Assembly: GCF_000315625.1 (NCBI RefSeq)
Contig: NW_005434639.1
Span: 463,615-527,614 of the forward strand
DNA length: 64,000 bases
Reading direction: 5' to 3'
DNA from: Guillardia theta CCMP2712
Taxonomy: Eukaryota; Protista; Cryptophyta
Positions 1 to 19,703 of this stretch are shown here, one piece after another. Every line of letters begins with the position of its first letter. Position 1 is the stretch's first letter. The position numbers and the translations under genes were made by a program. The notes beneath the pieces were generated by a model. It did not search any database. It was not told the DNA's origin and saw only the letters and a program-made list of their open reading frames with translations.

Positions 1-44
1 TTTAAATTTGTTGTCCTCATCTCATCTACGGTTCGCCCACATCC

Positions 45-2123
45 ATGATGCGATCGCCTCTCCTCCTCCTCCTCCTCCTCCTCCTCCTTGACCCTGCACA
101 TGCTTCCAGTCACGAAGAGCCTGTCCACCATCCGTCCAGCAAGGGGCTTCACGGCTCCTTCCACATCGCTCCCGATTTCAAGAAGCTGGCCGACACAATC
201 GCACAAAACATGATGGCGGCGAAGCGAGCTCTCCAGCTCCACAAGCTCCAAGATGCTGGCAAGCCGCAGACAGGCAGCTCTGTCCGTCAATCTACATCCT
301 GTCCAGACTCTACTCAGGTCATCGCGAACTGCAGCTTAGAGTACTCCAGCATGTACAGCCCAAGTGCCGACATGGCAAGCATTTGTCAATCGAGCAGCAC
401 CTGCGTCAGTCAGCTGCAGACGCTGTCGAGCAAGTACAAGAGCACAGCCGGATGCTCGACCGACTATCAGGCTCAGAGTGTCCAGGCCTGGCTGTTACAG
501 ATCAAATATGGCTGTGTGAAAGACGGAAGTAAGTACTGCGCGACCACATGGGCGAGCGCTACCGATTTGTCGTACAAGGTGGTGGACGCGAGCTGGATAA
601 GACGTCGCGGCTGACAATGCTGTCAGGATCTGTGCAGCTCTGCGTGCTTCAGCCAGTACAGGACCATATACCAAGAAGTGTACGGGGCCTCTGAAGCCGA
701 GTACCTCAACATGGTGTGCCAGAAGGACTCCAAAGGCAACTACTGCATGGACACGATGACGTCGTCAGAGACAGCAATGTCCGGCAGCATGATATGCTCT
801 GAGTGCGGCGCGCTGGTACGGCCTGTCGGATCAGGAGGCAGAGAAGCTTGCGGGCTGACAACGTGCGACAGATGATAAAGATGTCCCAGTCGTCTGGCGC
901 ATCGATCGCTGACAGCAGCGTCGACATCGACACCGTATATGGGGCCATGTGCTCGAAAGGTGATCAGAGCCCGACGTGACCAAGCGCTATGAGCTGACGT
1001 CATGCTCAGACGGCGACTCCTACTGCTTTGACAAATTCATCGCGGCAGCTTTGTCCACCGGAGCCAGCGGCAGCAGCAGCTCCGAGACCTGTGACGGGAC
1101 GAGCTCGACCTGTACCAACGTCTGTAAGGTACGCGCGAGTGCCAGACTGCTCCGGCCGCCTTCCTTCTCAATGAGTCTTGATGCCTCCCAGAACGACCTC
1201 AAGACGGTCAACGACATTGGCTGCTGCGCAGGCTCCATGCTCGCAGCGATCCCTGAATCGAAGAAAGAGGCCGAGAACGCGGCGAAGCTCTGCTCTCAAA
1301 GCCTGCCGAAGCCATGTGAGCTCTGACAGGCCGCACGCGGAGCTTGTGACAGCTGACGTCTCGAGGGGCTGCGCAGGCGGGGCGGGGCCCTCGTTCAACC
1401 TCAAGATCGAGATATCGAACCTCAAGCAGAGCTGGTACGCCGCAAACAAGGCCACCGCAGACCCCTTGGTGAGTCGCGTCATGTCTCGAGAGAGAAGGCG
1501 GCGCCATGCCTGATCTTGAGCAGCTCGCCACGGACATGAACTCGGCCTTCGGCACTACAGCTGGGCAGGTGAGAGAGAGCGCAGAGGCCCCGCCTGCGCG
1601 TGCGATGATGGGCGGGGGGATGACGAGAGGCTGGCAGGCGAAGATGGGGGCGTCGACGGCAGGAGCAGGCGGCACTTCCATCGACGTGAGCATCACCACC
1701 GCCAACAAAGATCAGGTAACTTCGCTAGACCCGTAAGCGCTGCTCTGATGACGTCACGGCTAGGGTACTGCGGTAGAGAACAACATCAAAAAGTACAAGG
1801 CGAGGCGGAGCGGAAGCGTAAGTCAAGGACTGTGTCTCTGACCGAAGGCGCTGACGGATGGCTGGTAGTCCCTTAGCCTGGCCACCACGAGCACAAACCT
1901 TCCCTCCGACGCCAAGATCGACCCGTCCAAGGCTTTAAGCGTCACGGTCTCGTCCTACGTCAAGGGCTCCTCGGCTGCCTCGCGATCTCTTGCGTGGTCG
2001 GTGCTGTCGGTGGTTGTGCTGAACGTGTTGGTGAGACCTGCGATGCCGGGGCTTGCGAGAGACCTGACGATCAAGGGCTGCTGCAGGTCGTGGGGAGGAT
2101 GGGTGCTCATTGGTGAGGGATAG
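45..2123 (+). CDS. Multi-exon secreted cysteine-rich surface protein, possibly GPI-anchored (copy A, apparently intact)
   Basis: Signal peptide MMRSPLLLLLLLLLLDPAHA; repeated Cys motifs (CVKDGSKYC, CQKDSKGNYC, GDSYC, IGCCAG); short GT-AG introns; hydrophobic C-terminal tail SLAWSVLSVVVLNVL. 3' end approximate. Confidence 0.7.
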
Positions 2124-2557
2124 GATCCTACTGTGAGGATCCGGACTCGTGGAGTGCTCTTTTGGACAAGAGAAGTGGTAGCCATGAGGCATGAAGAGAT
2201 CGCAGTCGGATGACCGCGTGAAGCTGATGCTTGACGGAGCCTATGTTGCTGACCGTACTCAATGACAACGTAGTCATTAGTCACTTGCCACAACACAATA
2301 CTTACAAAGCTACCTACAAGAATACTTGATAACATACATGATCACGGATCTTTTACACGTTATCCTGGCCCGCGCACAGACCGACGGTGCTGCTCGATGA
2401 GAGCGTGTTGCCGACTGACCATCTCATTGAAACTAGCACTGAGTGTCTTCAAGGTCGTTTCGCAGGCCACTGGCCTGCAATACTTGATTAAGAGTAAAAA
2501 CAAACCTTCCAGTCAACAATCAAGGATATTTGAAAACTTGACCAAGGAGATTCCTCA

Positions 2558-5507
2558 ATGGCTGAAGATGATGTTCTCCAGTCGCTGGTGCGGTTATGGC
2601 AGCGGACGGCCTCCCCCTCCTCCCCCTCCTCCCTCCCTCCCCCCTCGTCCTCCTGCCTGCCCAGCGCTCCCGCAAGTCAGCTTCCTCAGCCCTCCAGTCA
2701 CTCCTATCAAGCTGCGTTCCTGTCCTCCTGCGCAAGCCTTCCTCATGCGGCGAGGGTAGCCAAGATGAAAGCTACTCAAGAAGACTTGCTGCGAATGCTG
2801 CTGCTGGCCTGCCGGGAAAGGATCGACGGCCTTTGCTCATCCATGAGGATGAGCGAGGAGGAGAAGACGTCACATCCGGAGTTACTGAGCAGCGAGGTGT
2901 CTGAAGGGCTGCTGCTGAAGCTGGAGGATCTCGAAGCAAGGCTGACGAGGGACATGGAGAGCATGAGATCACTTCTTGCAGGAGTGGCTGAGTACGAGAA
3001 CCTTCTCCGAGAGCGGGCGATGCTGGAAACAACCTTCACCGACTCCTCCAGGCTGCTGGATCGCACTTCGAACTCGTACACTCTTCGGCGATCGGAGGAG
3101 CGGTACAAGGCTCTGGTGCTCAAGATCATACCTGAGAGAAGGAAGGAGCTGCTGGGGACGAAGGTACCTTGACAGCCCAGATGAAGTGATACCAGCGGAC
3201 GAGGAAGGTGTACGGGGACGAGGAGCAGAGCAGTCTCAGGTGAAGGCGAGCAGAGGAAATGATATGAAGGGATCGCAGAATGTTTCGAAAGAGAGGATAG
3301 TCCGCATCCAGCACAATCGTGACAGAGGCGAAGAGCACATCTCCCAAGTCTCACAGTCTATCTCCTTCATCTCTGCTGCAGAGCCTTCTATAGAGCCAGA
3401 CGCTTCTCCAGGTCAACCGCTAGTCTCCTCTCTGCACAGTAGCTCAAGTGCTTGTAGCTCGGCGGTCGAAGAAGCAAGAGCGTGCTTCAAGCCTGCTGAT
3501 GGACCGGGTGGAAGCCCTGGAGACCTGGGCAAGAGAGCGGTGCGACAGGGGTGGTGTTCTTGACTGCGTGGACGTCAGGTCCTGAAGCAGCAAGGAGAGA
3601 TATCAGCGATGCAGGACCAGGAGAGGCTGATGAGACAAGGTCCGTGATGAGGCGGCTGGTTTTCTGTGCTAACCCCTCCTCGCAAGAGCTGGGAGAGTCG
3701 GACTCCAAGAGCAGAGACGCGGCTATCCACAAGCTGACAGTGAGGATGAGAAGAATGGAAGGTGGAGTTTCGGGGCGTCCTCCTGCCCCTGACATGAGCG
3801 CAGACATGATGAAGAGATGTCAAGTCGGACAAGACTCGCCCAAGGCAGAGGGTCACACCAATGGTGGGTCTGGCGCTTGCTGACATGCTGCAGAGAAATC
3901 CAAGAGCATGCCTGCGGATGCGTTGGTGCTGAAGAAGGATCATAGCAAACTCCAAGAATCGCTCAAGCTTGCCCAAGAAAAGATTGTGACGTTGGAGGTT
4001 CGGGTCGGGCGCTCGCACCGCCTTGTGACAAGCCGAGCAGGCCAAGCAAGGGAAGCTGATAGAGCAGCTGGCGGAGCTCTCGCTCAAGCTGCAAGGTGAG
4101 TCAGGAGGGAGAGACTCGATGGGATGAGCTCAGGATGAGGTGCAGACAAGAAGTTCGTCCAGCCGTTAGACCTCAAGTCTGCCTTTCAGAGCTTGTTCCA
4201 AGGCTTCACCAACGTCCTCGACCCCTCTCAGCCAAAACGAGCCGGTTCCCCAGCTTTCTCCTTCTCCTGCTCTGCTCCTGCCCTTGTTTACCTCCTGCTC
4301 TGCTCCTGCTCATCCTCCTTCTCGCCTTGTTGGATCCTCAAGTCTCTCTAGGTAACTCGGGTGAGGAGAAGAAGGTTCGCTTCGCCTACATCGGCGAGCA
4401 CTTCGCTCACTCGCTACTGAGCGGCTTCAGCGCCATCGAGAAAGTGGAGAAGAAGCATCTTGAGCTCCTGGTCGAGCTGGAGGAGCAGCGGGAGAGGCAC
4501 CAGCAGGAGAGGATCGAAATTTCCCGCAAGCTTGCGGACGTCCTGTCGAGATGCGACAACTGCGACACCGTGGCAGAAGAAGTTAAACTCGACCTGCAGG
4601 AGGTCGCTGCTCGCGCAGAGGAAGGGAGGGAGGCAGCTCGGAGCGTGTGCTGTCTGAGCGACGAAGTGATTTCCTGCCAGCAAGGCTTGGACGAACTCCG
4701 CTCGCGCACTGTCATGCTGGAAGAGAGGAGCGGGCAATCTGAGGGGAGCAAGTCAGCACAGAGACAGGGAGATGTAAAGCAGGAAGGAGGTACAAGAGAG
4801 TGCGGAGAAGAGCATGGGGAGGAGGGGAGGAGCGCGTTGGAGGATCTTTCCTCGCGCGTGTCTCTCCTTGAAGCTTCTCTGGCAGCCTCTGCTCCCTCTC
4901 CCTCTCCCTCTATATCCGCTGAGGCCATCAACGCGCTCAGTGAGGAGCTCACAGAGAGGATAGAGGAGTCTGCGGCGCGACGAGACAGCAGCCTGATGAA
5001 GACGCTGGAGGAGGCGATGCTCTCCTGCGTGTCGCGCGACGACGTGCGAGAGAGTCTGCTGCTGTATGCCAGCAAGAAGGACCTCAAGGCGAGCGAGAGC
5101 AGGACCTGGGAGCGCATCGCCAAGGTCGAGGAGGAGGGAGCGCAGACTTCTGCGATGATCAAGCTGGCGAGGAAGGAGCTGGAGGGGATGAAGAGTAGCT
5201 TCCTCCTCTCCTCGCAGGAGCTCGCGGCAAAGCTCTCGAGCCACGAAGAAGACTGTGCCGAGGCGGTAGACGCGCTGTCAGGCAGCATTGCACAAGTCTC
5301 GTCCGAGCTCTTCAAGTTTGCAGCAAGTCAGTCGGAGCTGTTTGTTCGACGCGACGAGCTCGCCAGCATTCGAACCTTGACGAGCAAGGCGGAGAGTGAA
5401 GACAACAGAAGCAGCGAGCTAGAGGAGGAGCGGGAGGGGGAAGAGACACAGCAGCATTCGAGGGAAGAGGAGGCAAAGAAGGATCAGGAGGGGAAAGGAG
5501 AGGGAAA
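2558..5507 (+). pseudogene. MAP65/Ase1/PRC1-domain coiled-coil gene, copy A: frameshifted and 3'-truncated
   Basis: Lacks 50 bp present in copy B (17346-17395) after 3153, removing the EAIEEWERSNGKAFL motif and shifting frame; homology to copy B stops at 5507, 13 nt before the element. Confidence 0.8.
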
Positions 5508-5520
5508 CTTGACGAGACAA

Positions 5521-8104
5521 ATGGTATCAGCATGTGGGTATTGTTGACTTCATTGAAAATTAGCATTGCACTGCAGTGGTTTTCATCGAGGAATTTCAAA
5601 TATGGACGACTGAAGACCACCCTGAAGACCATCAAAATAACAGAGGGTCTTGTGACTCTGTACGTAAAAACGATGATTCCTGCGTACAATACAACAATAA
5701 ATCTATTACACTACTAAAATTTAAATATATTCCTATTGCAGTACAATGCTAATAATATCCAAATTAAAACACTTGAAAACACAATGACAAAATTTCTATT
5801 AAGATTATGTTCAATAAATATTAATCACCCATTGCAATAAATATTATTTCAATTAAAATAATATCCAATAAATATTAATCTTGAATCTTGTTGCCATATC
5901 AATGTAAATTAATGCTGCAGTGTGGTGCATAAATTACACAATGTAAAACGGCGGTATAGCATGAGCAAAGCGAATGCTATGATGAGCACGCAGTGCTCAT
6001 CTATTCCATTGCAACTTGTGCTACACTTGTTATTCCTATTACACTAGAATACCAACAAGATTCAAGATTCAACATTGGAAAAATATATTATAACCCAATT
6101 ATATTTATTGAACAAAATTTGAATAAGAATAATAAACAAGATATTTTTCTAATTTCATATCAATGTAAATCATTGCTGCATTGCGGTGCATAAATTACAC
6201 AATGTAAAACGGCGGTATAGCATGAGCAACGCGAATGCTATGATGAGCGCGCAGTGCGAATCTATTCCATTGCAACTTGAGCTTCACTATTACACTCGCA
6301 AACCCTTGATTACAAGTCTTCAGTCGTCCATATTTGAAATTCCTCGATGAAAACCACTGCAGTGCAATGCTAATTTTCAATGAAGTCAACAATACCCACA
6401 TGCTGATACCAAATGGTAGAATTCATACCTTTAAACACAGGCATGAATCCTTAATTAAAAAAATGAATCTGTTTCAATATCAGTGTCTAAAACATCAACA
6501 GATGCCTCCTAAAAAACAATTGGATGACCATATGCCACCAAATATTATCAAATCCGCTGATGCTCCTCTTCCTAAAACATTTATTGATTTAGAGATTCTT
6601 GATTAATTCATTTATAGAACTATTCAATAAAACAAAAATAAATCATATTTTTTTATACTTACTATATACACCTATGTCGTGCATGTTTTACACTTTTCCC
6701 ACACATTTTAACAGCGTTACTGCATGAAATGCGGTGGGCAAGGCCCTATCACTGTTACACTTGCTAAACTTGATTACAATGCTTACCATTAATATATCCT
6801 TTCAATTATAGCATCACATCACTGTTTGTTTTCACAACATTTCAATAAATATCAACGAGCGTACCCACGGAGTGGCTTGAACAAACATATTATACATTTG
6901 TTTTCCTATTAATTATCTCAGGCATCACGAGCTTAAATAAGTGATGCTCCACCAATCAACCTATTGGAAATACATCTGCAACGATTCTCTCTTTTGAATG
7001 TGCGTGAACCTGTAACTCTATATCAACACAAATTTAACATTAATTATCAAAACCAATAAGTGCAACATTTTTTGTGTGGTGTGATCATGCACGCATATAT
7101 ACATCTGCAACCCGAATACATAAGCAACGATTCTCTCTTTTGGAAATACATCTGCAACTTTTTGGATGTGCGTGAACCTATAACTCTATAGTAACCTATA
7201 TCATTCACACCAATAAGTGCAATCCGTTTTTTTGTGTGGTTTGATCATACACTCATATATACATGTGCAACCAATTGGAAATACATCAGCAACCTGAATG
7301 TATCTGCAACTTTTTGGATGTGCGTGAACCTATAACTCTATAGTAACCTATATCATTCACACCAATAAGTGTAATACGTTTTTTTGTGTGGTGTGATCAT
7401 ACACTCATATACACATCTGCAACCAATTGAAAATACATCAGCAACCCGAATGCATCCGCAACGATTCTCTCTTTTGAATTTGCGTGACTCTGTTAACCTG
7501 TGACAACTCAAATCTAACATTAAATATTAAAACCAATAAGTGCAACCTTTTTTGTGTGGTTGCCTCCGGCAAGCACAGCGTGTGATGATACACGCATATA
7601 TACATCTGCAACCCGAATGCATCAGGAACCAATTGGAAAGACATTTGCAACCTTTTGGATGTGCGTGAACCTGTAACTCTATAGTAACCTATATCATTCA
7701 CACCAATAAGTGCAATACGTTTTTTTGTGTGGTTTGATCATACACTCATATATACATGTGCAACGATTCTCTCTTTTGAATGTGCGTGAACATGTAACTC
7801 TATGACAACCCAAATCTAATATTAAAACCAAAAAGTGCAATACGTTTTTTGTGTGGTTGCCTCCGGCAAGCAAAGCGGCAAAGCGTGTGATGATACACTC
7901 ATATATACATCTGCAACCCGAATGCATCAGGAACCAATTGGAAATACATTTGCAACCAATTGGATGTGCGTGAACCTGTAACTCTATAGTAACCTATATC
8001 ATTCACACCAAAAAGTGCAATCCATTTTTTTGTGTGGTGTGATCATGCACGCATATACACATCTGCAACCAATTGGAAATATATCTGCAACCCGAATGCA
8101 TCAG
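5521..8104 (+). repeat. Left terminal inverted repeat (2,584 bp)
   Basis: Reverse complement of 11473-14056; mirrored ORFs, e.g. 7694..7927(-) / 11650..11883(+) and 6334..6606(+) / 12971..13243(-); one mismatch seen (6264 vs 13313). Confidence 0.97.
5522..6411. repeat. 890-bp terminal module bounded by its own 96-bp inverted repeat (5522-5617 / 6316-6411); mirrored at 13166-14055
   Basis: TGGTATCAG...GACTGAAGAC is the reverse complement of GTCTTCAGTC...CTGATACCA; the interior holds a ~120-bp direct repeat (about 5896-6019 and 6157-6279). Confidence 0.92.
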
Positions 8105-8415
8105 GAACCAATTGGAAATACATTTTCAACCAATTGGATGTGCGTGAACCTGTAACTCTATATATCAAGTTAAATCTAATTTATCATTCCCACCAAAAAG
8201 TGCAATCCATTTTTTTGTGTGGTGTGATCATGCACGCATATACACATCTGCAACCAATTGGAAATATATCTGCAACCCGAATGCATCAGGAACCAATTGG
8301 AAATACATTTGCAACCAATTGGATGTGCGTGAACCTGTAACTCTATAGTAACCTATATCATTCCCACCAAAAAGTGCAATCCATTTTTTTGTGTGGTGTG
8401 ATCATGCACTCATAT
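6960..8415 (+). repeat. Degenerate modular tandem array, 9 units; 7 mirrored in the right TIR
   Basis: TGCGTGA(A)C anchor at 7001, 7169, 7321, 7481, 7662, 7783, 7967, 8141, 8326; shared sub-blocks AAGTGCAA, TTTTTTGTGTGGT, CATCTGCAACC, CCAATTGGAAATACAT. Confidence 0.93.
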
Positions 8416-8485
8416 AAAAAGTAAAGCTTTTGTGGTGTGAGTACTTAAAAAAATGAACATTGAAATATAAGATTAAGATAGAAAA

Positions 8486-8992
8486 ATGTCTGATTCCCTA
8501 GAAAATTCATTAGGGAAAATAGAGATAGATATGAAAGAATATGTAGAAGAATGGAAAATAGAAGAAGATGTGATAACTTATGGGAAACATATATGTTGTG
8601 TATGCAATGAAGAAGAAGCGACAATAGAATGTGAGCAATGCAAATCATATCCGATATGTATAGATTGTATAAATAATCTAAAGAAGAGATATGTATATTA
8701 CAAAGAGATATTTGAAGTGAAGGGGATAACACGTAAATATGATGAGAGACATAGTCATAAGATAACATTTGAATGTCCATTGTGTAGGAAGGTGAATGAG
8801 ATAAGCATGTGGAAAGAAGAATTAACGAAGGAGGATGTGATAAAATTCACGTTTGGAGATTATGCATTTATCTCAATGCTAGTGAATGAGAATAAAATCC
8901 TGAATGAAAGCATGAAAAACTCATATCATAGAGATTATCAAGGAGATTATGAAGGAAAACATAGAATTGAAGGACTACAAGAAAAGATATGA
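8486..8992 (+). CDS. C8 RING-type zinc-finger protein (element ORF1)
   Basis: Cx2C-x8-Cx2C-x5-Cx2C-x35-CPLCR pattern; intronless; AT-rich codons; AAAAATG start context. Confidence 0.75.
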   Translation: MSDSLENSLGKIEIDMKEYVEEWKIEEDVITYGKHICCVCNEEEATIECEQCKSYPICIDCINNLKKRYVYYKEIFEVKGITRKYDERHSHKITFECPLCRKVNEISMWKEELTKEDVIKFTFGDYAFISMLVNENKILNESMKNSYHRDYQGDYEGKHRIEGLQEKI

Positions 8993-9323
8993 AGACTTGA
9001 TGAGATATATAAATGAGAAGAAAGATATATTTGATAAAGAATCGTGCAATATAGAGAATCAGAAATTAAGATTTAAATTGAGCGATAGTGTAAGGGAAAT
9101 AAAAGAATTGAAGAGAGAGAAAATGTTGCTAAGAGCATATAATGAAGGTTTATGTCACATGATGGAAAAATATAAATCAATGGTGAAAGAAAGTTTTATG
9201 AAAGTGGATAGATATACGAAGAGAAAAAGGGATGAATTCATAGGAAAACTAGAATTGCGAATGAGAATAAATGTAAAAGTGAGAGAGGATAACACTCATG
9301 AATGTTATAGTTCATGGATATAA
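8949..9323 (+). CDS. Coiled-coil ORF2, probably the frameshifted C-terminal half of ORF1
   Basis: K/E/L-rich heptad-like sequence; overlaps ORF1; its frame stays open back to the A5 run at 8915-8919. Confidence 0.6.
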   Translation: MKENIELKDYKKRYEDLMRYINEKKDIFDKESCNIENQKLRFKLSDSVREIKELKREKMLLRAYNEGLCHMMEKYKSMVKESFMKVDRYTKRKRDEFIGKLELRMRINVKVREDNTHECYSSWI

Positions 9324-9347
9324 AGGTTTTTTATTTATAAAGAGTAA

Positions 9348-9770
9348 ATGTCGTGTTCAGAAAAACAAAGGGGGGAAGCAAAAGAGGATAAACGAGAATA
9401 TAGCAACAGGAAGAATAGAGAACACAAGGAACGAATGAAGGCAGACGGTACAATAAAGAAATATTATGATCAGATAAACTCATTGAACAGGGAGAAATAT
9501 CAAAAGAATGAAGAATTCCACAAGATGATGAATGAAATAGTAAGAAGGAATCAACATAGAAGATATAATGAAGACCCAGAATATAGAGAGAAGATCAAGA
9601 AGAGGAATCAAGAAAGATATTATATGAAAAAACAAGCTGCATTAACAGCAAAAGCAGGTTTGTGCGAAGGAGAAGATGATCAAACCTTCCTTTCCGAGTC
9701 CATCCATGCTTCTATCGTCGACCTTTGCATTGTCAAGATATGGAAAACATCCATCAATTCTATCCAATGA
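9348..9770 (+). CDS. Small basic helical protein (element ORF3)
   Basis: Repeated R/K-Y motifs (NREKYQKNEEF, RRYNEDPEYREKIKKRNQERYY); 24-nt AT-rich spacer after ORF2; composition shifts near 9655. Confidence 0.65.
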   Translation: MSCSEKQRGEAKEDKREYSNRKNREHKERMKADGTIKKYYDQINSLNREKYQKNEEFHKMMNEIVRRNQHRRYNEDPEYREKIKKRNQERYYMKKQAALTAKAGLCEGEDDQTFLSESIHASIVDLCIVKIWKTSINSIQ

Positions 9771-11197
9771 ATTTGGATAGCCCTCAGGTTGCCTCGACTT
9801 TGAACCATATCAGTCCAAGGCCAGACCGTCGTTTGCCGTCATGGGACCTGAAAACCTGGAGGGGAGTAGAGTACTTTGCTTGGATGGAAGGCTTCCTTGA
9901 TTGCAAAGGTAGACCAGATGTCAGCACATTTATGAGCTTTGTTGGAAATGGATATTTGTTTTCACCAGCATCTGTTGTCGGCAATACCATACAGGGATAT
10001 TTCAGTCTGTCATGTCAGGTGAATCAGCTACAGTATGAAAAGGAAATGCTTACTAGGGAAAATATGGCGCTGAAAGAGTTGTTGCCAAACGTAGACAGAA
10101 TTTTGAACTTGACGTTCGAAGACATTTGGAAAGCCAATTATCCCAATGATAAGTGCCCCATGAATGTCGAAGATATCCCCAAGGAGTTCGAGTATCGGAA
10201 GGAAAAAATTCTCAAAGACATTTTCTCCGAGGTTGGGTCATTATCTGCTTTGTTGTCAAAAGGTATTCGTCAGATGTCTGGGCTTAATGGCTCTAGTCAG
10301 GCTGGAAAGGCATTCGGCCATCTTTCCACGTTGAGGCAAAATCCGGATTCATTGTTTCATTTCGAAAATTTTTTGACAGGATATGCTCACGCAATTGCAC
10401 CGAATTTGGACAGCCGTTGTGAGAGAAATCGCAAAGTCAAAAAAGCCATCCAGAGCTTGTATGATGCAATAGCTCCCAACGTGGATGAAGTTGGTCTCTT
10501 GACTATGGGTCAACAGCTGACACACAAATCTTTGAAATTCGTTCATGACATGATGAAAAAATGCGGAGTCAAAATATTTGGAAGTACATCTTCTATCAGT
10601 ACTTCGAGAGCCAAGCAGAAGAAGCTTGTGACTGACATGGTGGACGGAATCAATGAACTTCCTGGCGGACATGGTGCTTCCATTCTCAAATTGCTCGAAC
10701 TGTTGTTCATGAAGCTTGCGCGAGAAGATCCAAACATGTACCTTGTAGAATCCTTGGTGCTTTCCCTCTGTTTCGATAGCACGAGATTGGGATCATCAGC
10801 TCAGTCAGGTACAGAACAGACAGAGTTTGCAATGAATCTCATAGCTGTGTGGAACAAGGCGGTTGACGTTGCAAACTCTATGTTTGACCAGGAGACCAGA
10901 ATGAATTCGCCTGCTTCATATATCTCTTTCTTGTTGTTGTACCTGAAGGACACTATCGAGAATATTGACAAGAATCTGTGGAATGTCTATGGTTTTGATT
11001 TGAAAAGCATCTTGAAGGATCTGTTTGTCACTTGTGAGAACGGAGAGATCAAGAAAATCAAAGCTGGACTTCACTTCTACAAGGACAAAGATGGGGTTTT
11101 GAACTGCATTGGGGGACGTGATAGAACAGCCAGTGATCCGAATTCCACACCTGATCTCGTCATTGAAATAAAAAATATTTGGCCTACCCCACCTTAA
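9725..11197 (+). CDS. Putative RAG1/Transib-like DDE transposase, C-terminally truncated (element ORF4)
   Basis: 490-aa uninterrupted ORF (coding status likely). Family call is by motif order: LTHKSLKFVHDMMKKCGVKIFGS, then LVLSLCFDSTRLG (D codon 10775-10777), QTEFAMNLI, NSPASYISFLLLYLKDTIENI. No CxxC or catalytic E region follows. Confidence 0.5.
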   Translation: MHCQDMENIHQFYPMNLDSPQVASTLNHISPRPDRRLPSWDLKTWRGVEYFAWMEGFLDCKGRPDVSTFMSFVGNGYLFSPASVVGNTIQGYFSLSCQVNQLQYEKEMLTRENMALKELLPNVDRILNLTFEDIWKANYPNDKCPMNVEDIPKEFEYRKEKILKDIFSEVGSLSALLSKGIRQMSGLNGSSQAGKAFGHLSTLRQNPDSLFHFENFLTGYAHAIAPNLDSRCERNRKVKKAIQSLYDAIAPNVDEVGLLTMGQQLTHKSLKFVHDMMKKCGVKIFGSTSSISTSRAKQKKLVTDMVDGINELPGGHGASILKLLELLFMKLAREDPNMYLVESLVLSLCFDSTRLGSSAQSGTEQTEFAMNLIAVWNKAVDVANSMFDQETRMNSPASYISFLLLYLKDTIENIDKNLWNVYGFDLKSILKDLFVTCENGEIKKIKAGLHFYKDKDGVLNCIGGRDRTASDPNSTPDLVIEIKNIWPTPP

Positions 11198-11472
11198 GAC
11201 ATATGACATAAAAACAAGGGGTAGTCATCGGCTGTCTTGCCTGAGCGGACGGGTGCCTAGAAGATTCAGAAACTTTTTGGTACAAAATTTGTACGAAGGG
11301 GTCAGGACCCCTCTGGTACAAAACATGCAACGATTTGGTACAAGTATTTTAAAGCCCGTACAAACAAAATGGTCTGGTACAATAAATTCCAGAAGGGACT
11401 TGGAACGGAATGCAACCTAAACCTGCTAAAAAACCAGCTAAACTGCATCCTAATTCCCTGTTAGCATTGGAA

Positions 11473-14056
11473 CTGATGCATTCGGGTTGCAGATATATTT
11501 CCAATTGGTTGCAGATGTGTATATGCGTGCATGATCACACCACACAAAAAAATGGATTGCACTTTTTGGTGTGAATGATATAGGTTACTATAGAGTTACA
11601 GGTTCACGCACATCCAATTGGTTGCAAATGTATTTCCAATTGGTTCCTGATGCATTCGGGTTGCAGATGTATATATGAGTGTATCATCACACGCTTTGCC
11701 GCTTTGCTTGCCGGAGGCAACCACACAAAAAACGTATTGCACTTTTTGGTTTTAATATTAGATTTGGGTTGTCATAGAGTTACATGTTCACGCACATTCA
11801 AAAGAGAGAATCGTTGCACATGTATATATGAGTGTATGATCAAACCACACAAAAAAACGTATTGCACTTATTGGTGTGAATGATATAGGTTACTATAGAG
11901 TTACAGGTTCACGCACATCCAAAAGGTTGCAAATGTCTTTCCAATTGGTTCCTGATGCATTCGGGTTGCAGATGTATATATGCGTGTATCATCACACGCT
12001 GTGCTTGCCGGAGGCAACCACACAAAAAAGGTTGCACTTATTGGTTTTAATATTTAATGTTAGATTTGAGTTGTCACAGGTTAACAGAGTCACGCAAATT
12101 CAAAAGAGAGAATCGTTGCGGATGCATTCGGGTTGCTGATGTATTTTCAATTGGTTGCAGATGTGTATATGAGTGTATGATCACACCACACAAAAAAACG
12201 TATTACACTTATTGGTGTGAATGATATAGGTTACTATAGAGTTATAGGTTCACGCACATCCAAAAAGTTGCAGATACATTCAGGTTGCTGATGTATTTCC
12301 AATTGGTTGCACATGTATATATGAGTGTATGATCAAACCACACAAAAAAACGGATTGCACTTATTGGTGTGAATGATATAGGTTACTATAGAGTTATAGG
12401 TTCACGCACATCCAAAAAGTTGCAGATGTATTTCCAAAAGAGAGAATCGTTGCTTATGTATTCGGGTTGCAGATGTATATATGCGTGCATGATCACACCA
12501 CACAAAAAATGTTGCACTTATTGGTTTTGATAATTAATGTTAAATTTGTGTTGATATAGAGTTACAGGTTCACGCACATTCAAAAGAGAGAATCGTTGCA
12601 GATGTATTTCCAATAGGTTGATTGGTGGAGCATCACTTATTTAAGCTCGTGATGCCTGAGATAATTAATAGGAAAACAAATGTATAATATGTTTGTTCAA
12701 GCCACTCCGTGGGTACGCTCGTTGATATTTATTGAAATGTTGTGAAAACAAACAGTGATGTGATGCTATAATTGAAAGGATATATTAATGGTAAGCATTG
12801 TAATCAAGTTTAGCAAGTGTAACAGTGATAGGGCCTTGCCCACCGCATTTCATGCAGTAACGCTGTTAAAATGTGTGGGAAAAGTGTAAAACATGCACGA
12901 CATAGGTGTATATAGTAAGTATAAAAAAATATGATTTATTTTTGTTTTATTGAATAGTTCTATAAATGAATTAATCAAGAATCTCTAAATCAATAAATGT
13001 TTTAGGAAGAGGAGCATCAGCGGATTTGATAATATTTGGTGGCATATGGTCATCCAATTGTTTTTTAGGAGGCATCTGTTGATGTTTTAGACACTGATAT
13101 TGAAACAGATTCATTTTTTTAATTAAGGATTCATGCCTGTGTTTAAAGGTATGAATTCTACCATTTGGTATCAGCATGTGGGTATTGTTGACTTCATTGA
13201 AAATTAGCATTGCACTGCAGTGGTTTTCATCGAGGAATTTCAAATATGGACGACTGAAGACTTGTAATCAAGGGTTTGCGAGTGTAATAGTGAAGCTCAA
13301 GTTGCAATGGAACAGATTCGCACTGCGCGCTCATCATAGCATTCGCGTTGCTCATGCTATACCGCCGTTTTACATTGTGTAATTTATGCACCGCAATGCA
13401 GCAATGATTTACATTGATATGAAATTAGAAAAATATCTTGTTTATTATTCTTATTCAAATTTTGTTCAATAAATATAATTGGGTTATAATATATTTTTCC
13501 AATGTTGAATCTTGAATCTTGTTGGTATTCTAGTGTAATAGGAATAACAAGTGTAGCACAAGTTGCAATGGAATAGATGAGCACTGCGTGCTCATCATAG
13601 CATTCGCTTTGCTCATGCTATACCGCCGTTTTACATTGTGTAATTTATGCACCACACTGCAGCATTAATTTACATTGATATGGCAACAAGATTCAAGATT
13701 AATATTTATTGGATATTATTTTAATTGAAATAATATTTATTGCAATGGGTGATTAATATTTATTGAACATAATCTTAATAGAAATTTTGTCATTGTGTTT
13801 TCAAGTGTTTTAATTTGGATATTATTAGCATTGTACTGCAATAGGAATATATTTAAATTTTAGTAGTGTAATAGATTTATTGTTGTATTGTACGCAGGAA
13901 TCATCGTTTTTACGTACAGAGTCACAAGACCCTCTGTTATTTTGATGGTCTTCAGGGTGGTCTTCAGTCGTCCATATTTGAAATTCCTCGATGAAAACCA
14001 CTGCAGTGCAATGCTAATTTTCAATGAAGTCAACAATACCCACATGCTGATACCAT
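11473..14056 (-). repeat. Right terminal inverted repeat (2,584 bp)
   Basis: Begins CTGATGCATTCGGGTTGC at 11473, matching GCAACCCGAATGCATCAG ending at 8104. Confidence 0.97.
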
Positions 14057-14235
14057 ATTTGGTTGCAGCGCAGGTGAGCACCCCTACAGTTTAGCGTAAA
14101 TCAAGGGGTGAAGGTGATCAATCTAAAACCCTTTATATGAAGTTGACATTTTAGGGAGAAGTACCCCGTGGTCTTCCCAGTTTCTTGGGAGTGATAGGGG
14201 TGGGTAGGGGAGAAAGGCGGTGCCGCGCTCAAATT

Positions 14236-17200
14236 CATGATGCGATCGCCTCTCCTCCTCCTCCTCCTCCTCCTCCTCCTTGACCCCGCACATGCTTCCA
14301 GTCACGAAGAGCCTGTCCACCATCCATCCAGCAAGGGGCTTCACGGCTCCTTCCACATCGCTCCCGATTTCAAGAAGCTGGCCGACACAATCGCACAAAA
14401 CATGATGGCGGCGAAGCGAGCTCTCCAGCTCCACAAGCTCCAAGATGCTGGCAAGCTGCAGACAGGCAGCTCTGTCCGTCAATCTACATCCTGTCCAGAC
14501 TCTACTCAGGTCATCGCGAACTGCAGCTTAGAGTACTCCAGCATGTACAGCCCAAGTGCCGACATGGCAAGCATTTGTCAATCGAGCAGCACCTGCGTCA
14601 GTCAGCTGCAGACGCTGTCGAGCAAGTACAAGAGCACAGCCGGATGCTCGACCGACTATCAGGCTCAGAGTGTCCAGGCCTGGCTGTTACAGATCAAATA
14701 TGGCTGTGTGAAAGACGGAAGTAAGTACTGCGCGACCACATGGGCGAGCGCTACCGATTTGTCGTACAAGGTGGTGGACGCGAGCTGGATAAGACGTCGC
14801 GGCTGACAATGCTGTCAGGATCTGTGCAGCTCTGCGTGCTTCAGCCAGTACAGGACCATATACCAAGAAGTGTACGGGGCCTCTGAAGCCGAGTACCTCA
14901 ACATGGTGTGCCAGAAGGACTCCAAAGGCAACTACTGCATGGACACGATGACGTCGTCAGAGACAGCAATGTCCGGCAGCATGATATGCTCTGAGTGCGG
15001 CGCGCTGGTACGGCCTGTCGGATCAGGAGGCAGAGAAGCTTGCGGGCTGACAACGTGCGACAGATGATAAAGATGTCCCAGTCGTCTGGCGCATCGATCG
15101 CTGACAGCAGCGTCGACATCGACACCGTATATGGGGCCATGTGCTCGAAAGGTGATCAGAGCCCGACGTGACCAAGCGCTATGAGCTGACGTCATGCTCA
15201 GACGGCGACTCCTACTGCTTTGACAAATTCATCGCGGCAGCTTTGTCCGCCGCAGCCAGCGGCGGCAGCAGCTCCGAGACCTGTGACGGGACGAGCTCGA
15301 CCTGTACCAACGTCTGTAAGGTACGCGCGAGTGCCAGACTGCTCCGGCCGCCTTCCTTCTCAATGAGTGCCGAAAGTAAACATGCCCTAATGAAACCCAA
15401 CATTTTTTACGTTGATCTGAAGAATCTAGGACGAGGAGCAGAAAAGAATAATGAAAGAGGCCGAGAACGCGGCGAAGCTCTGCTCTCAAAGCCTGCCGAA
15501 GCCATGTGAGCTCTGACAGGCCGCACGCGGAGCTTGTGACAGCTGACGTCTCGAGGGGCTGCGCAGGCGGGGCGGGGCCCTCGTTCAACCTCAAGATCGA
15601 GATATCGAACCTCAAGCAGAGCTGGTACGCCGCAAACAAGGCCACCGCAGACCCCTTGGTGAGTCGCGTCATGTCTCGAGAGAGAAGGCGGCGCCATGCC
15701 TGATCTTGAGCAGCTCGCCACGGACATGAACTCGGCCTTCGGCACTACAGCTGGGCAGGTGAGAGAGAGCGCAGAGGCCCCGCCTGCGCGTGCGATGATG
15801 TGCGGGGGGATGACGAGAGGCTGGCAGGCGAAGATGGGGACGTCGACGGCAGGAGCAGGCGGCACTTCCATCGACGTGAGCATCACCACCGCCAACAAAG
15901 ATCAGGTAACTTCGCTAGACCCGTAAGCGCTGCTCTGATGACGTCACGGCTAGGGTACTGCGGTAGAGAACAACATCAAAAAGTACAAGGCAAGGCGGAG
16001 CGGAAGCGTAAGTCAAGGACTGTGTCTCTGACCGAAGGCGCTGACGGATGGCTGGTAGTCCCTTAGCCTGGCCACCACGAGCACAAACCTTCCCTCCGAC
16101 GCCAAGATCGACCCGTCAAAGGGTTTCAGCGTCACGGTCTCGTCCTACGTCAAGGCCTCCTCGGCTGCCTCGCGATCTCTTGCGTGGTCGGTGCTGTCGG
16201 TGGTTGTGCTGAACGTGTTGGTGAGACCTGCGATGCTGGGGCTTGCGAGAACCTGACGATCAAGGGCTGCTGCAGGTCGTGGGGAGGATGGGTGCTCATT
16301 GGTGAGGGATAGGATCCTACTGTGAGGATCCGGACTCGTGGAGTGCTCTTTTGGACAAGAGAAGTGGTAGCCATGAGGCATGAAGAGATCGCAGTCGGAT
16401 GACCGCGTGAAGCTGATGCTTGACGGAGCCTATGTTGCTGACCGTACTCAATGACAACGTAGTCATTAGTCACTTGCCACAACACAACACTTACAAAGCT
16501 ACCTAGAAGAATACTTGATAACATTATACATGATCACGGATCTTTTACACGTTATCCTGGCCCGCGCACAGACCGACGGTGCTGCTCGATGAGAGCGTGT
16601 TGCCGACTGACCATCTCATTGAAACTAGCACTGAGTGTCTTCAAGGTCGTTTCGCAGGCCACTGGCCTGCAATACTTGATTAAGAGTAAAAACAAACCTT
16701 CCAGTCAACAATCAAGGATATTTGAAAACTTGACCAAGGAGATTCCTCAATGGCTGAAGATGATGTTCTCCAGTCGCTGGTGCGGTTATGGCAGCGGACG
16801 GCCTCCCCCTCCTCCCCCTCCTCCCTCCCTCCCCCCTCGTCCTCCTGCCTGCCCTGCGCTCCCGCAAGTCAGCTTCCTCAGCCCTCCAGTCACTCCTATC
16901 AAGCTGCGTTCCTGTCCTCCTGCGCAAGCCTTCCTCATGCGGCGAGGGTAGCCAAGATGAAAGCTACTCAAGAAGACTTGCTGCGAATGCTGCTGCTGGC
17001 CTGCCGGGAAAGGATCGACGGCCTTTGCTCATCCATGAGGATGAGCGAGGAGGAGAAGACGTCACATCCGGAGTTACTGAGCAGCGAGGTGTCTGAAGGG
17101 CTGCTGCTGAAGCTGGAGGATCTCGAAGCAAGGCTGACGAGGGACATGGAGAGCATGAGATCACTTCTTGCAGGAGTGGCTGAGTACGAGAACCTTCTCC

Positions 17201-19703
17201 GAGAGCGGGCGATGCTGGAAACAACCTTCACCGACTCCTCCAGGCTGCTGGATCGCACTTCGAACTCGTACACTCTTCGGCGATCGGAGGAGCGGTACAA
17301 GGCTCTGGTGCTCAAGATCATACCTGAGAGAAGGAAGGAGCTGCTAGAAGCGATAGAGGAGTGGGAGAGGAGCAACGGGAAGGCGTTCTTGACGTGGGGA
17401 CGAAGGTACCTGGACAGCCCAGATGAAGTGATACCAGCGGACGAGGAAGGTGTACGGGGACGAGGAGCAGAGCAGTCTCAGGTGAAAGAGAGGATAGTCC
17501 GCATCCAGCACAATCGTGACAGAGGCCAAGAGCACATCTCCCAAGTGTCACAGTCTATCTCCTTCGTCTCTGCTGCAGAGCCTTCTATAGAGCCAGACGC
17601 TTCTCCAGGTCAACCGCTAGTCTCCTCTCTGCACAGTAGCTCAAGTGCTTGTAGCTCGGCGGTCGAAGAAGCAAGAGCGTGCTTCAAGCCTGCTGATGGA
17701 CCGGGTGGAAGCCCTGGAGACCTGGGCAAGAGAGCGGTGCGACAGGGGTGGTGTTCTTGACTGCGTGGACGTCAGGTCCTGAAGCAGCAAGGAGAGATAT
17801 CAGCGATGCAGGACCAGGAGAGGCTGATGAGACAAGGTCCGTGATGAGGCTGCTGATTTCTGTGCTAACCCCTCCTCGCAAGAGCTGGGAGAGTCGGACT
17901 CCAAGAGCAGAGACGCGGCTATCCACAAGCTGACAGTGAGGATGAGAAGAATGGAAGGTGGAGTTTCGGGGCGTCCTCCTGCCCCTGACATCAGCGCAGA
18001 CATGATGAAGAGATGTCAAGTCGGACAAGACTCGCCCAAGGCAGAGGGTCACACCAATGGTGGGTCTGGCGCTTGCTGACATGCTGCAGAGAAATCCAAG
18101 AGCATGCCTGCGGATGCGTTGGTGCTGAAGAAGGATCATAGCAAACTCCAAGAATCGCTCAAGCTTGCCCAAGAAAAGATTGTGACGTTGGAGGTTCGGG
18201 TCGGGCGCTCGCACCGCCTTGTGACAAGCCGAGCAGGCCAAGCAAGGGAAGCTGATAGAGCAGCTGGCGGAGCTCTCGCTCAAGCTGCAAGGTGAGTCAG
18301 GAGGGAGAGACTCGATGGGATGAGCTGAGGATGAGGTGCAGACAAGAAGTTCGTCCAGCCGTCAGACCTCAAGTCTGCCTTTCAGAGCTTGTTCCAAGGC
18401 TTCACCAACGTCCTCGACCCCTCTCAGCCAAAACGAGCCGGTTCCCCAGCTTTCTCCTTCTCCTGCTCTGCTCCTGCCCTTGTTTACCTCCTGCTCTGCT
18501 CCTGCTCATCCTCCTTCTCGCCTTGTTGGACCCTCAAGTCTCTCTAGGTAACTCGGGTGAGGAGAAGAAGGTTCGCTTCGCCTACATCGGCGAGCACTTC
18601 GCTCACTCGCTACTGAGCGGCTTCAGCGCCATCGAGAAAGTGGAGAAGAAGCATCTTGAGCTCCTGGTCGAGCTGGAGGAGCAGCGGGAGAGGCACCAGC
18701 AGGAGAGGATCGAAATTTCCCGCAAGCTTGCGGACGTCCTGTCGAGATGCGACAACTGCGACACCGTGGCAGAAGAAGTTAAACTCGACCTGCAGGAGGT
18801 CGCTGCTCGCGCAGAGGAAGGGAGGGAGGCAGCTCGGAGCGTGTGCTGTCTGAGCGACGAAGTGATTTCCTGCCAGCAAGGCTTGGACGAACTCCGCTCG
18901 CGCACTGTCATGCTGGAAGAGAGGAGCGGGCAATCTGAGGGGAGCAAGTCAGCACAGAGACAGGGAGATGTTAAGCAGGAAGGAGGTACAAGAGAGTGCG
19001 GAGAAGAAGATGGGGAGGAGGGGAGGAGCGCGTTGGAGGATCTTTCCTCGCGCGTGTCTCTCCTTGAAGCTTCTCTGGCTGCCTCTGCTCCCTCTCCCTC
19101 TCCCTCTATATCCGCTGAGGCCATCAACGCGCTCAGTGAGGAGCTAACAGAGAGGATGGAGGAGTCTGCGGCGCGACGAGACAGCAGCCTGATGAAGACG
19201 CTGGAGGAGGCGATGCTCTCCTGCGTGTCGCGCGACGACGTGCGAGAGAGTCTGCTGCTGTATGCCAGCAAGAAGGACCTCAAGGCGAGCGAGAGCAGGA
19301 CCTGGGAGCGCATCGCCAAGGTCGAGGAGGAGGGAGCGCAGACTTCTGCGATGATCAAGCTGGCGAGGAAGGAGCTGGAGGGGATGAAGAGTAGCTTCCT
19401 CCTCTCCTCGCAGGAGCTCGCGGCAAAGCTCTCGAGCCACGAAGAAGACTGTGCCGAGGCGGTAGACGCGCTGTCAGGCAGCATTGCACAAGTCTCGTCC
19501 GAGCTCTTCAAGTTTGCAGCAAGTCAGTCGGAGCTGTTTGTTCGACGCGACGAGCTCGCCAGCATTCGAACCTTGACGAGCAAGGCGGAGAGTGAAGACA
19601 ACAGAAGCAGCGAGCTAGAGGAGGAGCGGGAGGGGGAAGAGACACAGCAGCATTCGAGGGAAGAGGAGGCAAAGAAGGATCAGGAGGGGAAAGGAGAGGG
19701 AAA
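14236..19703 (+). repeat. Segmental direct duplication, copy B (partner 44-5507)
   Basis: See copy A; continues into unique sequence after 19703. Confidence 0.97.
14237..16312 (+). pseudogene. Cysteine-rich surface protein gene, copy B: probably disrupted
   Basis: 15369-15452 is unrelated sequence replacing copy A 1177-1262, removing a splice acceptor (CCCAG) and the NDLKTVNDIGCCAGSMLAAIPES coding segment; upstream DNA also differs from copy A. Confidence 0.7.

Follow-up and report, generated by a model that had tools for sequence, protein, structure and literature searches.

A 3'-truncated transposase gene copy in Guillardia theta, probably from a cryptophyte DNA transposon family with RAG1/Transib architecture

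A 64,000-nucleotide (nt) stretch of the nuclear genome of the cryptophyte Guillardia theta CCMP2712 (contig NW_005434639.1, positions 463,615 to 527,614; hereafter the window) contains an open reading frame (ORF), ORF4, which very probably represents a transposase gene, inactive and cut short at its 3' end, from a family of cryptophyte DNA transposons with RAG1/Transib architecture. This previously unnamed family is best regarded as a highly diverged variant of the RAG1/Transib kind. Vertebrate antibody and T-cell receptor diversity depends on the nuclease RAG1, the descent of which from Transib/RAGL transposons is under active debate. The locus points to a further RAG1-like lineage, in cryptophytes, with its own type of terminal inverted repeat (TIR) and a conserved partner gene. 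Such a lineage would provide an independent comparison for asking which RAG1 features (zinc module, long insertion, two-gene layout) are ancestral, and would also inform how partner subunits get recruited. The window copy, apparently a dead fragment, matters only as a marker of the family and of a recent rearrangement.

A truncated transposase gene in the window

ORF4, found at the position first reported, spans 9725-11197 on the forward strand and encodes 490 amino acids (aa) counted from a TTG codon. Alignments with its paralogues begin at an ATG at 9740, and because homologues align from there, this codon rather than the TTG is likely to be the real start. ORF4 is not a chance ORF, since its product is 99% identical to an annotated hypothetical protein of G. 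theta CCMP2712 (GUITHDRAFT_145307) and has homologues elsewhere, i.e. in G. theta, Hanusia phi, and metagenomes. In G. theta, there are at least five gene models of this transposase family besides the window fragment. As assessed by tblastn, the window covers only residues 1-482 of the 816-aa GUITHDRAFT_149260 (P0002), a full-length paralogue with which it shares 50% protein identity, and residues 1-370 of the partial 596-aa gene model GUITHDRAFT_145307, the 5' part of which lies at a second locus, L002. No recorded protein is identical to the product of ORF4 in an exact-product look-up, and a phage DNA search matched nothing. The features of the truncated copy are as follows.

9740..11197, forward strand: truncated coding region of a transposase of predicted RAG1/Transib fold, 485 aa, equivalent to P0002 residues 1-482; the final 7-8 codons and the stop derive from the rearrangement
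9688..11174, forward strand: segment matching L002 9625-11111 (5' part of GUITHDRAFT_145307), 99.7% identity, 5 differences in 1487 nt
10775..10777, forward strand: codon of the first candidate catalytic Asp (D351 of the ORF, D343 of P0002), the sole member of the D, D, E triad left in the window
11171..11175, no strand: rearrangement junction with short A-rich microhomology, where coding homology stops a few codons before the second-Asp motif FRGD
11173..11412, reverse strand: inverted copy of L002 8655-8894, the 240 bp at the left end of the L002 element, 99.2% identity
11384..11412, reverse strand: 29-nt TIR (CATTCCGTTCC...), tip at 11412, element end

The initial annotation had noted that ORF4 stops about where the second catalytic Asp is due, and indeed the ORF ends just before the FRGD motif. 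The break at this point is a rearrangement junction. Because the L002 frame runs on through position 11111, into EIDFRGDLKG, a short intron, CCLYC, and the C terminus, the window copy corresponds to a head-to-head rearrangement rather than a frameshift. By sequence comparison, ORF4 is interrupted by the inverted left end of its own element, and the homology to the element terminates precisely at the TIR tip. The string TYDIK (11199-11213, in another frame), previously put forward as the second-Asp motif, lies in this inverted non-coding left end and also occurs in a minus-strand reading of the left subterminal region of L002, whereas intact copies read IDFRGDLKG. Its resemblance to a catalytic motif is, on these alignments, a coincidence. 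The event joined the coding position equivalent to L002 11111 head-to-head to the inverted left end of the same element, leaving a fragment that now sits centrally in an unrelated AT-rich palindromic island. Considering its 99.7% identity to the L002 copy, the window copy arose recently.

What is left of the transposase in the window is the N-terminal region and the first three strands of the catalytic domain, including the first Asp. The second Asp, the putative zinc module, the catalytic Glu, and the partner gene are all missing, so this copy cannot catalyze transposition. In addition, when placed on the structural model of P0002, the break separates strand 3/helix 1 from strand 4, inside the predicted RNase H fold, and because of this further damage the window copy should be catalytically dead. 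A truncated protein might nevertheless have been retained for another role, either as an N-terminal DNA-binding/dimerization fragment that represses or regulates the intact elements, similar to truncated P-element or KP-type repressors, or as part of a product fused by splicing to the RING and coiled-coil ORFs found upstream. In keeping with this, 485 codons are open from the native ATG, 52 nt of native upstream sequence are kept 5' of it, and the upstream ORFs are on the same strand. However, ORF4 shows no trace of purifying selection, given that each of its five nucleotide differences from L002 is non-synonymous, and the pattern is consistent with a recently formed, unconstrained fragment. 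Moreover, no gene on record has the ORF4 product, a break within the RNase H fold should destabilize it, and the upstream ORFs, of different composition, are broken up by stops and a frame change. We therefore consider a functional truncated ORF4 quite improbable and treat it below as a dead copy.

Predicted fold and conserved residues of the transposase family

The suggestion that ORF4 resembles a RAG1/Transib-like transposase core originated from a few peptides, all of which are present: LTHKSLKF from 10517, LCFDSTRLG, the Asp of which is residue 351, and TEFAMNLI further on. The structural check proposed with it was run on P0002, the full-length paralogue to which the window fragment is 50% identical, modeled with AlphaFold2 (AF2) without templates from a 20-sequence alignment. 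The mean predicted local distance difference test score (pLDDT) was 74.6, rising to about 90 across residues 290-780. When the model was compared with the PDB using Foldseek, matches 1-49 were all RAG1, amphioxus BbRAGL, or HzTransib, with E-values from 2e-10 to 1e-3. The top chains were 6dbq_A for RAG1 (E 2.2e-10), 6b40_A for BbRAGL (1.9e-7), and 6pqx_A for HzTransib (1.2e-6), with target-normalized TM-scores of 0.46-0.57. The first different fold, P element transposase, appeared at rank 50 (E 1.2e-2). The proposed resemblance is thus borne out at the level of the predicted fold, and the P0002 model matches the fold of a RAG1 core, which is made up of PreR and RNase H domains, a ZnC2/ZnH2 insertion, and a C-terminal domain.

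Full-length paralogues carrying a second Asp, CxxC, a His pair, and Glu, proposed as a check, do exist. In P0002 numbering, D343, D477, C496, C499, H616, H752, H758, and E783 show no variation in any member that spans these columns, barring truncated or misaligned rows. They belong to the family motifs F/xRxD..G.W (D477), C496-x2-C499, C613-x2-H616-x3-R620, Y.H752-x5-H758, and E783-x2-H786. D343, the equivalent of the D351 that had been predicted for the first catalytic position, lies in strand 335-346, the first of the predicted RNase H sheet, and D477 immediately follows strand 470-476. An RNase H-like transposase would be expected to carry its first two carboxylates at these positions. D343, D477, and E783 are candidates for a catalytic D, D, E triad, sitting at the secondary-structure positions expected of one (strand 1, after strand 4, and a C-terminal helix). 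The CxxC is 19 residues past D477, the His pair is 25 residues ahead of E783, and the insertion between the second Asp and Glu is 275 residues long. We take the corresponding mouse RAG1 residues to be D600, D708, C727, C730, H937, H942, and E962, in which case the spacing from Asp to CxxC would be the same 19 residues, and the length of the insertion would presumably be closer to RAG1 than to HzTransib. A full-length family protein of about 800-870 aa would consist of an N-terminal helical region followed by an RNase H-like catalytic domain with two Asp and a conserved His in the active-site region, into which a CxxC and Hx5H zinc module would be inserted ahead of the catalytic Glu. In RAG1 and RAG1L, two Cys that follow the second Asp and two His that precede Glu make up the ZnC2/ZnH2 site (PMC7204232), and the family has the same residue pattern, suggestive of a zinc module.

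Alternatively, the family could fall into a different DDE superfamily that has an insertion domain (P element, hAT, or Mutator/IS256-like), the match to RAG1 being generic to an RNase H fold with a helical insertion. Several observations go in this direction. Searching the PDB with ORF4 (phmmer) and three family profiles (hmmsearch) returned a single match, an IS256/Mutator-family transposase, which was not significant (E 0.12-0.59), the P element transposase is in the Foldseek list, and the TIR termini and target site duplication (TSD) described below are unlike those of Transib. However, RAG1 outscores the P element by about 8 orders of magnitude in Foldseek E-value, no hAT or Mutator structure ranks above the P element, and the position of CxxC and the His pair is that of ZnC2/ZnH2. 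Furthermore, the Mutator alignment sets the catalytic IES motif against a stretch that is not conserved in the family. Membership of another DDE superfamily thus appears highly improbable, and a RAG1/Transib architecture remains the preferred assignment.

A number of findings nevertheless weigh against that assignment. Although the folds match, no link to RAG1 or Transib was found at the sequence level by Pfam (including its RAG1 model), PDB profile, or exhaustive HMMER searches. In Pfam, no meaningful family was identified for ORF4, neighboring ORFs, three paralogues, ten distant homologues, or a 17-member core alignment, and at least 13 family members failed to match RAG1 (PF12940) or Transib even at E-values up to 10. 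Profiles of 4, 17, and 20 family sequences recovered neither a RAG1 nor a Transib chain among PDB sequences. The exhaustive HMMER search of 1.84 billion representatives returned only 29 proteins, of which the named ones are hypothetical proteins of G. theta or Hanusia phi and the remainder come from metagenome contigs. The TM-scores are moderate (about 0.5) with a large root mean square deviation, as expected for multi-domain proteins, and the equivalence of D343, D477, and E783 to the RAG1 triad is suggested by motif order, spacing, and secondary-structure position. On the side of the DNA, there is no clean TSD at the two intact elements in L001 and L002, the TIRs start with CAT rather than a CAC heptamer-like sequence, and an element in L003 with a 3-bp TSD is tied to the transposase solely by a shared CATTC terminus and proximity.

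In a word-index protein search, ORF4 matched only three cryptophyte proteins, and the C-terminal half added nothing new. A closer family alignment found no related loci among viral and metagenome contigs. The family members are all annotated as hypothetical proteins and are recognized by neither Pfam nor HMMER.

Intact elements and their termini

In L002, the sole inverted repeat of at least 25 nt within 10 kb is a 29-nt pair (CATTCCGTTCCAAGTCCCTTCTGGAATTT, 93% identity) at 8655 and 13757, which encloses the transposase gene and a convergent 390-aa ORF. The 5.1-kb element thus delimited has a GC content of 0.42, vs 0.53 for its flanks. In L001, the two paralogous genes are framed by a comparable TIR pair (CATTCCATTGGG...), the members of which are separated by about 10.1 kb. 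Such intact elements have 27-29-nt TIRs beginning with CATTCC, the start seen in L001, L002, and the window, whereas a small element in L003 begins with CATTCT. Inside the TIRs, intact elements carry the transposase gene and a conserved partner that is transcribed toward it. Near the P0037, P0009, and P0031 genes, a TIR search gave nothing convincing.

The small L003 element (16504-18607) is a non-coding 2.1-kb sequence with 25-nt TIRs (CATTCTGGGGTCAAACCGCGGTAGT; start CATTCTGGGG) and a 3-bp TSD, GCT, 2.5 kb from another member of the transposase family. Of two inverted paralogous gene copies, one contains this insertion, and the other (around L003 14183) represents the empty site with a single GCT. 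In the three insertions examined, a 5-bp TSD was absent at L002 and L001, and the L003 element has 3 bp. By analogy with RAG1, Transib, and hAT, the fold suggests that an intact enzyme would nick at the TIR tip, after which a hairpin would form on the flanking DNA, and that the excised element would then integrate with a short staggered cut.

Other features of these loci were noted. An 88-nt piece of the L003 2.1-kb element is repeated at L001 13299-13386. The L002 element is flanked by an 11-nt direct repeat (GTTGGCCGGGC) at 8636-8654/13783-13793, which is separated from the left TIR by 2 nt and from the right TIR by 25 nt. The L001 flanks (1-74 and 10227-10300) are inverted repeats of each other over at least 74 nt, beside a 332-bp tandem array (10191-13187). 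A preference for certain targets, or nesting in a satellite, could account for these odd flanks. A short intron is found at an equivalent position in L002 (about 11200-11250) and L001 (about 4762-4830), between the GM(S/K)G and CxxC motifs, whereas the distant metagenomic members L004 and L008 are intron-less.

A conserved convergent partner gene

A partner ORF of 380-445 aa is arranged tail-to-tail with the transposase gene in L001, L002, L003, L004-6, and L008, which we count as five loci. The partner genes, all on the reverse strand, are listed below.

L002 12361-13533, reverse strand: partner gene
L001 5923-7197, reverse strand: partner gene
L003 12599-13933, reverse strand: partner gene
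L004 6139-7437, reverse strand: partner gene
L008 3102-4253, reverse strand: partner gene

The L001 and L002 partner proteins are 46% identical, and the most distant copy was aligned by hhalign with a probability of 99.5%. The partner has no match in Pfam, among PDB sequences, or in the word-index protein search. The AF2 model of the partner, rich in helices, is of low quality (pLDDT 46), and the Foldseek matches of this model, although weak (E 2e-3), are uniformly BAH domains, which is a mere hint of a BAH-like fold. A RAG2-like Kelch propeller was considered for the partner and found unsupported, with no Kelch signal, no sequence match, and a poor model rich in helices.

A more far-reaching reading is that cryptophytes carry a still-active two-gene RAG-like transposon, in which a RAG1-fold transposase that has diverged beyond the reach of any sequence model is paired with a convergent BAH-like chromatin reader replacing the Kelch/PHD RAG2. 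We regard this scenario as rather doubtful. If true, it would imply that a RAG1-type nuclease and a chromatin-reading subunit were paired more than once, or very early in eukaryotes, and that the RAG1 fold can operate with non-CAC ends and a 3-bp stagger.

Comparison with known systems

The best structural match to the family is RAG1/RAGL, represented by ProtoRAG of amphioxus and AanRAGL of the pelagophyte Aureococcus. Both have their conserved residues in the same order (D, D, CxxC, H, His pair, E), and the family's two-gene element with a convergent partner has the layout of RAG1L-RAG2L (PMC8355894). On the other hand, there is no detectable sequence similarity to RAG1/RAGL, the N-terminal RING/ZDD of RAG1 is missing, and the partner gives weak matches to BAH-like folds instead of a Kelch signal. 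The defining traits of RAGL elements are TIRs with a CAC heptamer, TSDs of 5 bp, and a RAG2L gene in tail-to-tail orientation (PMC8355894). The family has CATTC rather than CAC termini and no 5-bp TSD was seen, which leaves the tail-to-tail partner, comparable in layout only.

With Transib, the family shares the fold (HzTransib, PDB 6pqx, E 1.2e-6, target-normalized TM-score 0.57) and the general organization of a DDE cut-and-paste element with short TIRs. Transib elements have a single gene, 5-bp TSDs, and CAC-heptamer TIRs (PMC8355894), whereas the family has two genes, CATTC termini, a probable 3-bp TSD, and a transposase about 300 aa longer. The P element/THAP9 transposases are also similar in having an RNase H fold with a large insertion domain, but their fold match is far weaker than that of RAG1 (E 1.2e-2), and no THAP or GTP-binding domain was found in the family using Pfam.

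Outside animals, the pelagophyte Aureococcus has been reported to carry RAG1L-RAG2L pairs, with RAG1L fragments described from "several other primitive eukaryotes" and proteins resembling Transib from bacteria, fungi, and plants (PMC9435367). No link between Guillardia or cryptophytes and Transib was found in the text or supplements of that study, or in a full-text literature search.

The RING ORF and the AT-rich island around the fragment

The fragment lies within an 8.5-kb AT-rich island (5521-14056), which has a GC content of 0.32-0.35 vs about 0.57 for the host and consists of two long arms flanking a center of roughly 3 kb. Its features are as follows.

5521..8104, no strand: left arm of a perfect 2584-nt inverted repeat
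11473..14056, no strand: right arm of the same inverted repeat
8486..8992, forward strand: RING/B-box-like zinc-finger ORF, weak Pfam matches (E 0.002-0.014)
5522-5617/6316-6414 and 13163-13261/13960-14058: outer foldback repeats

The RING ORF had been taken to echo, together with ORF4, the RING-plus-core layout of RAG1. It is present upstream, as a separate ORF of different composition, but no counterpart exists at any of the intact element loci, and Pfam detects no RING in full-length family proteins. Together with the coiled-coil ORFs, it has the low GC of the island (0.32), vs 0.43 for the RAG1-like element. Because of its absence from intact loci and its different composition, the RING ORF is assigned to the island and is not part of the element, and the resemblance to RAG1 is accidental. 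No recorded protein is identical to its product in the exact-product look-up. Between 8486 and 9770 there are three successive ORFs on the same strand, the RING/B-box-like ORF being followed by two that are Lys/Glu-rich and coiled-coil-like. A frame change and a stop break up this series, which may represent a decayed or intron-containing gene of the island.

The island arms contain tandem subrepeats of 152, 185, and 305 nt with a recurring unit of ∼22 nt (ACATCTGCAACCAATTGGAAAT). There is no TSD at the ends of the island, and an Rfam search of it gave nothing. It may be a foldback-type element or palindrome, or conceivably an assembly artifact. A herpesvirus-like inverted-repeat segment or a prokaryotic origin was rejected, considering that the flanking DNA has few long ORFs and encodes eukaryotic domains (MAP65/ASE1, EF-hand, and Patched-SSD). 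Each outer end of the island is itself a foldback of ∼0.9 kb (5522-6414 and 13163-14058), bounded by 99-nt inverted repeats. The island lies between two direct copies of a 5.5-kb host segment (34-5507 and 14226-19703, 96.6% identity), each with a MAP65/ASE1-like gene; a cut at 5507 ends the first copy, and the second runs on into unique sequence.
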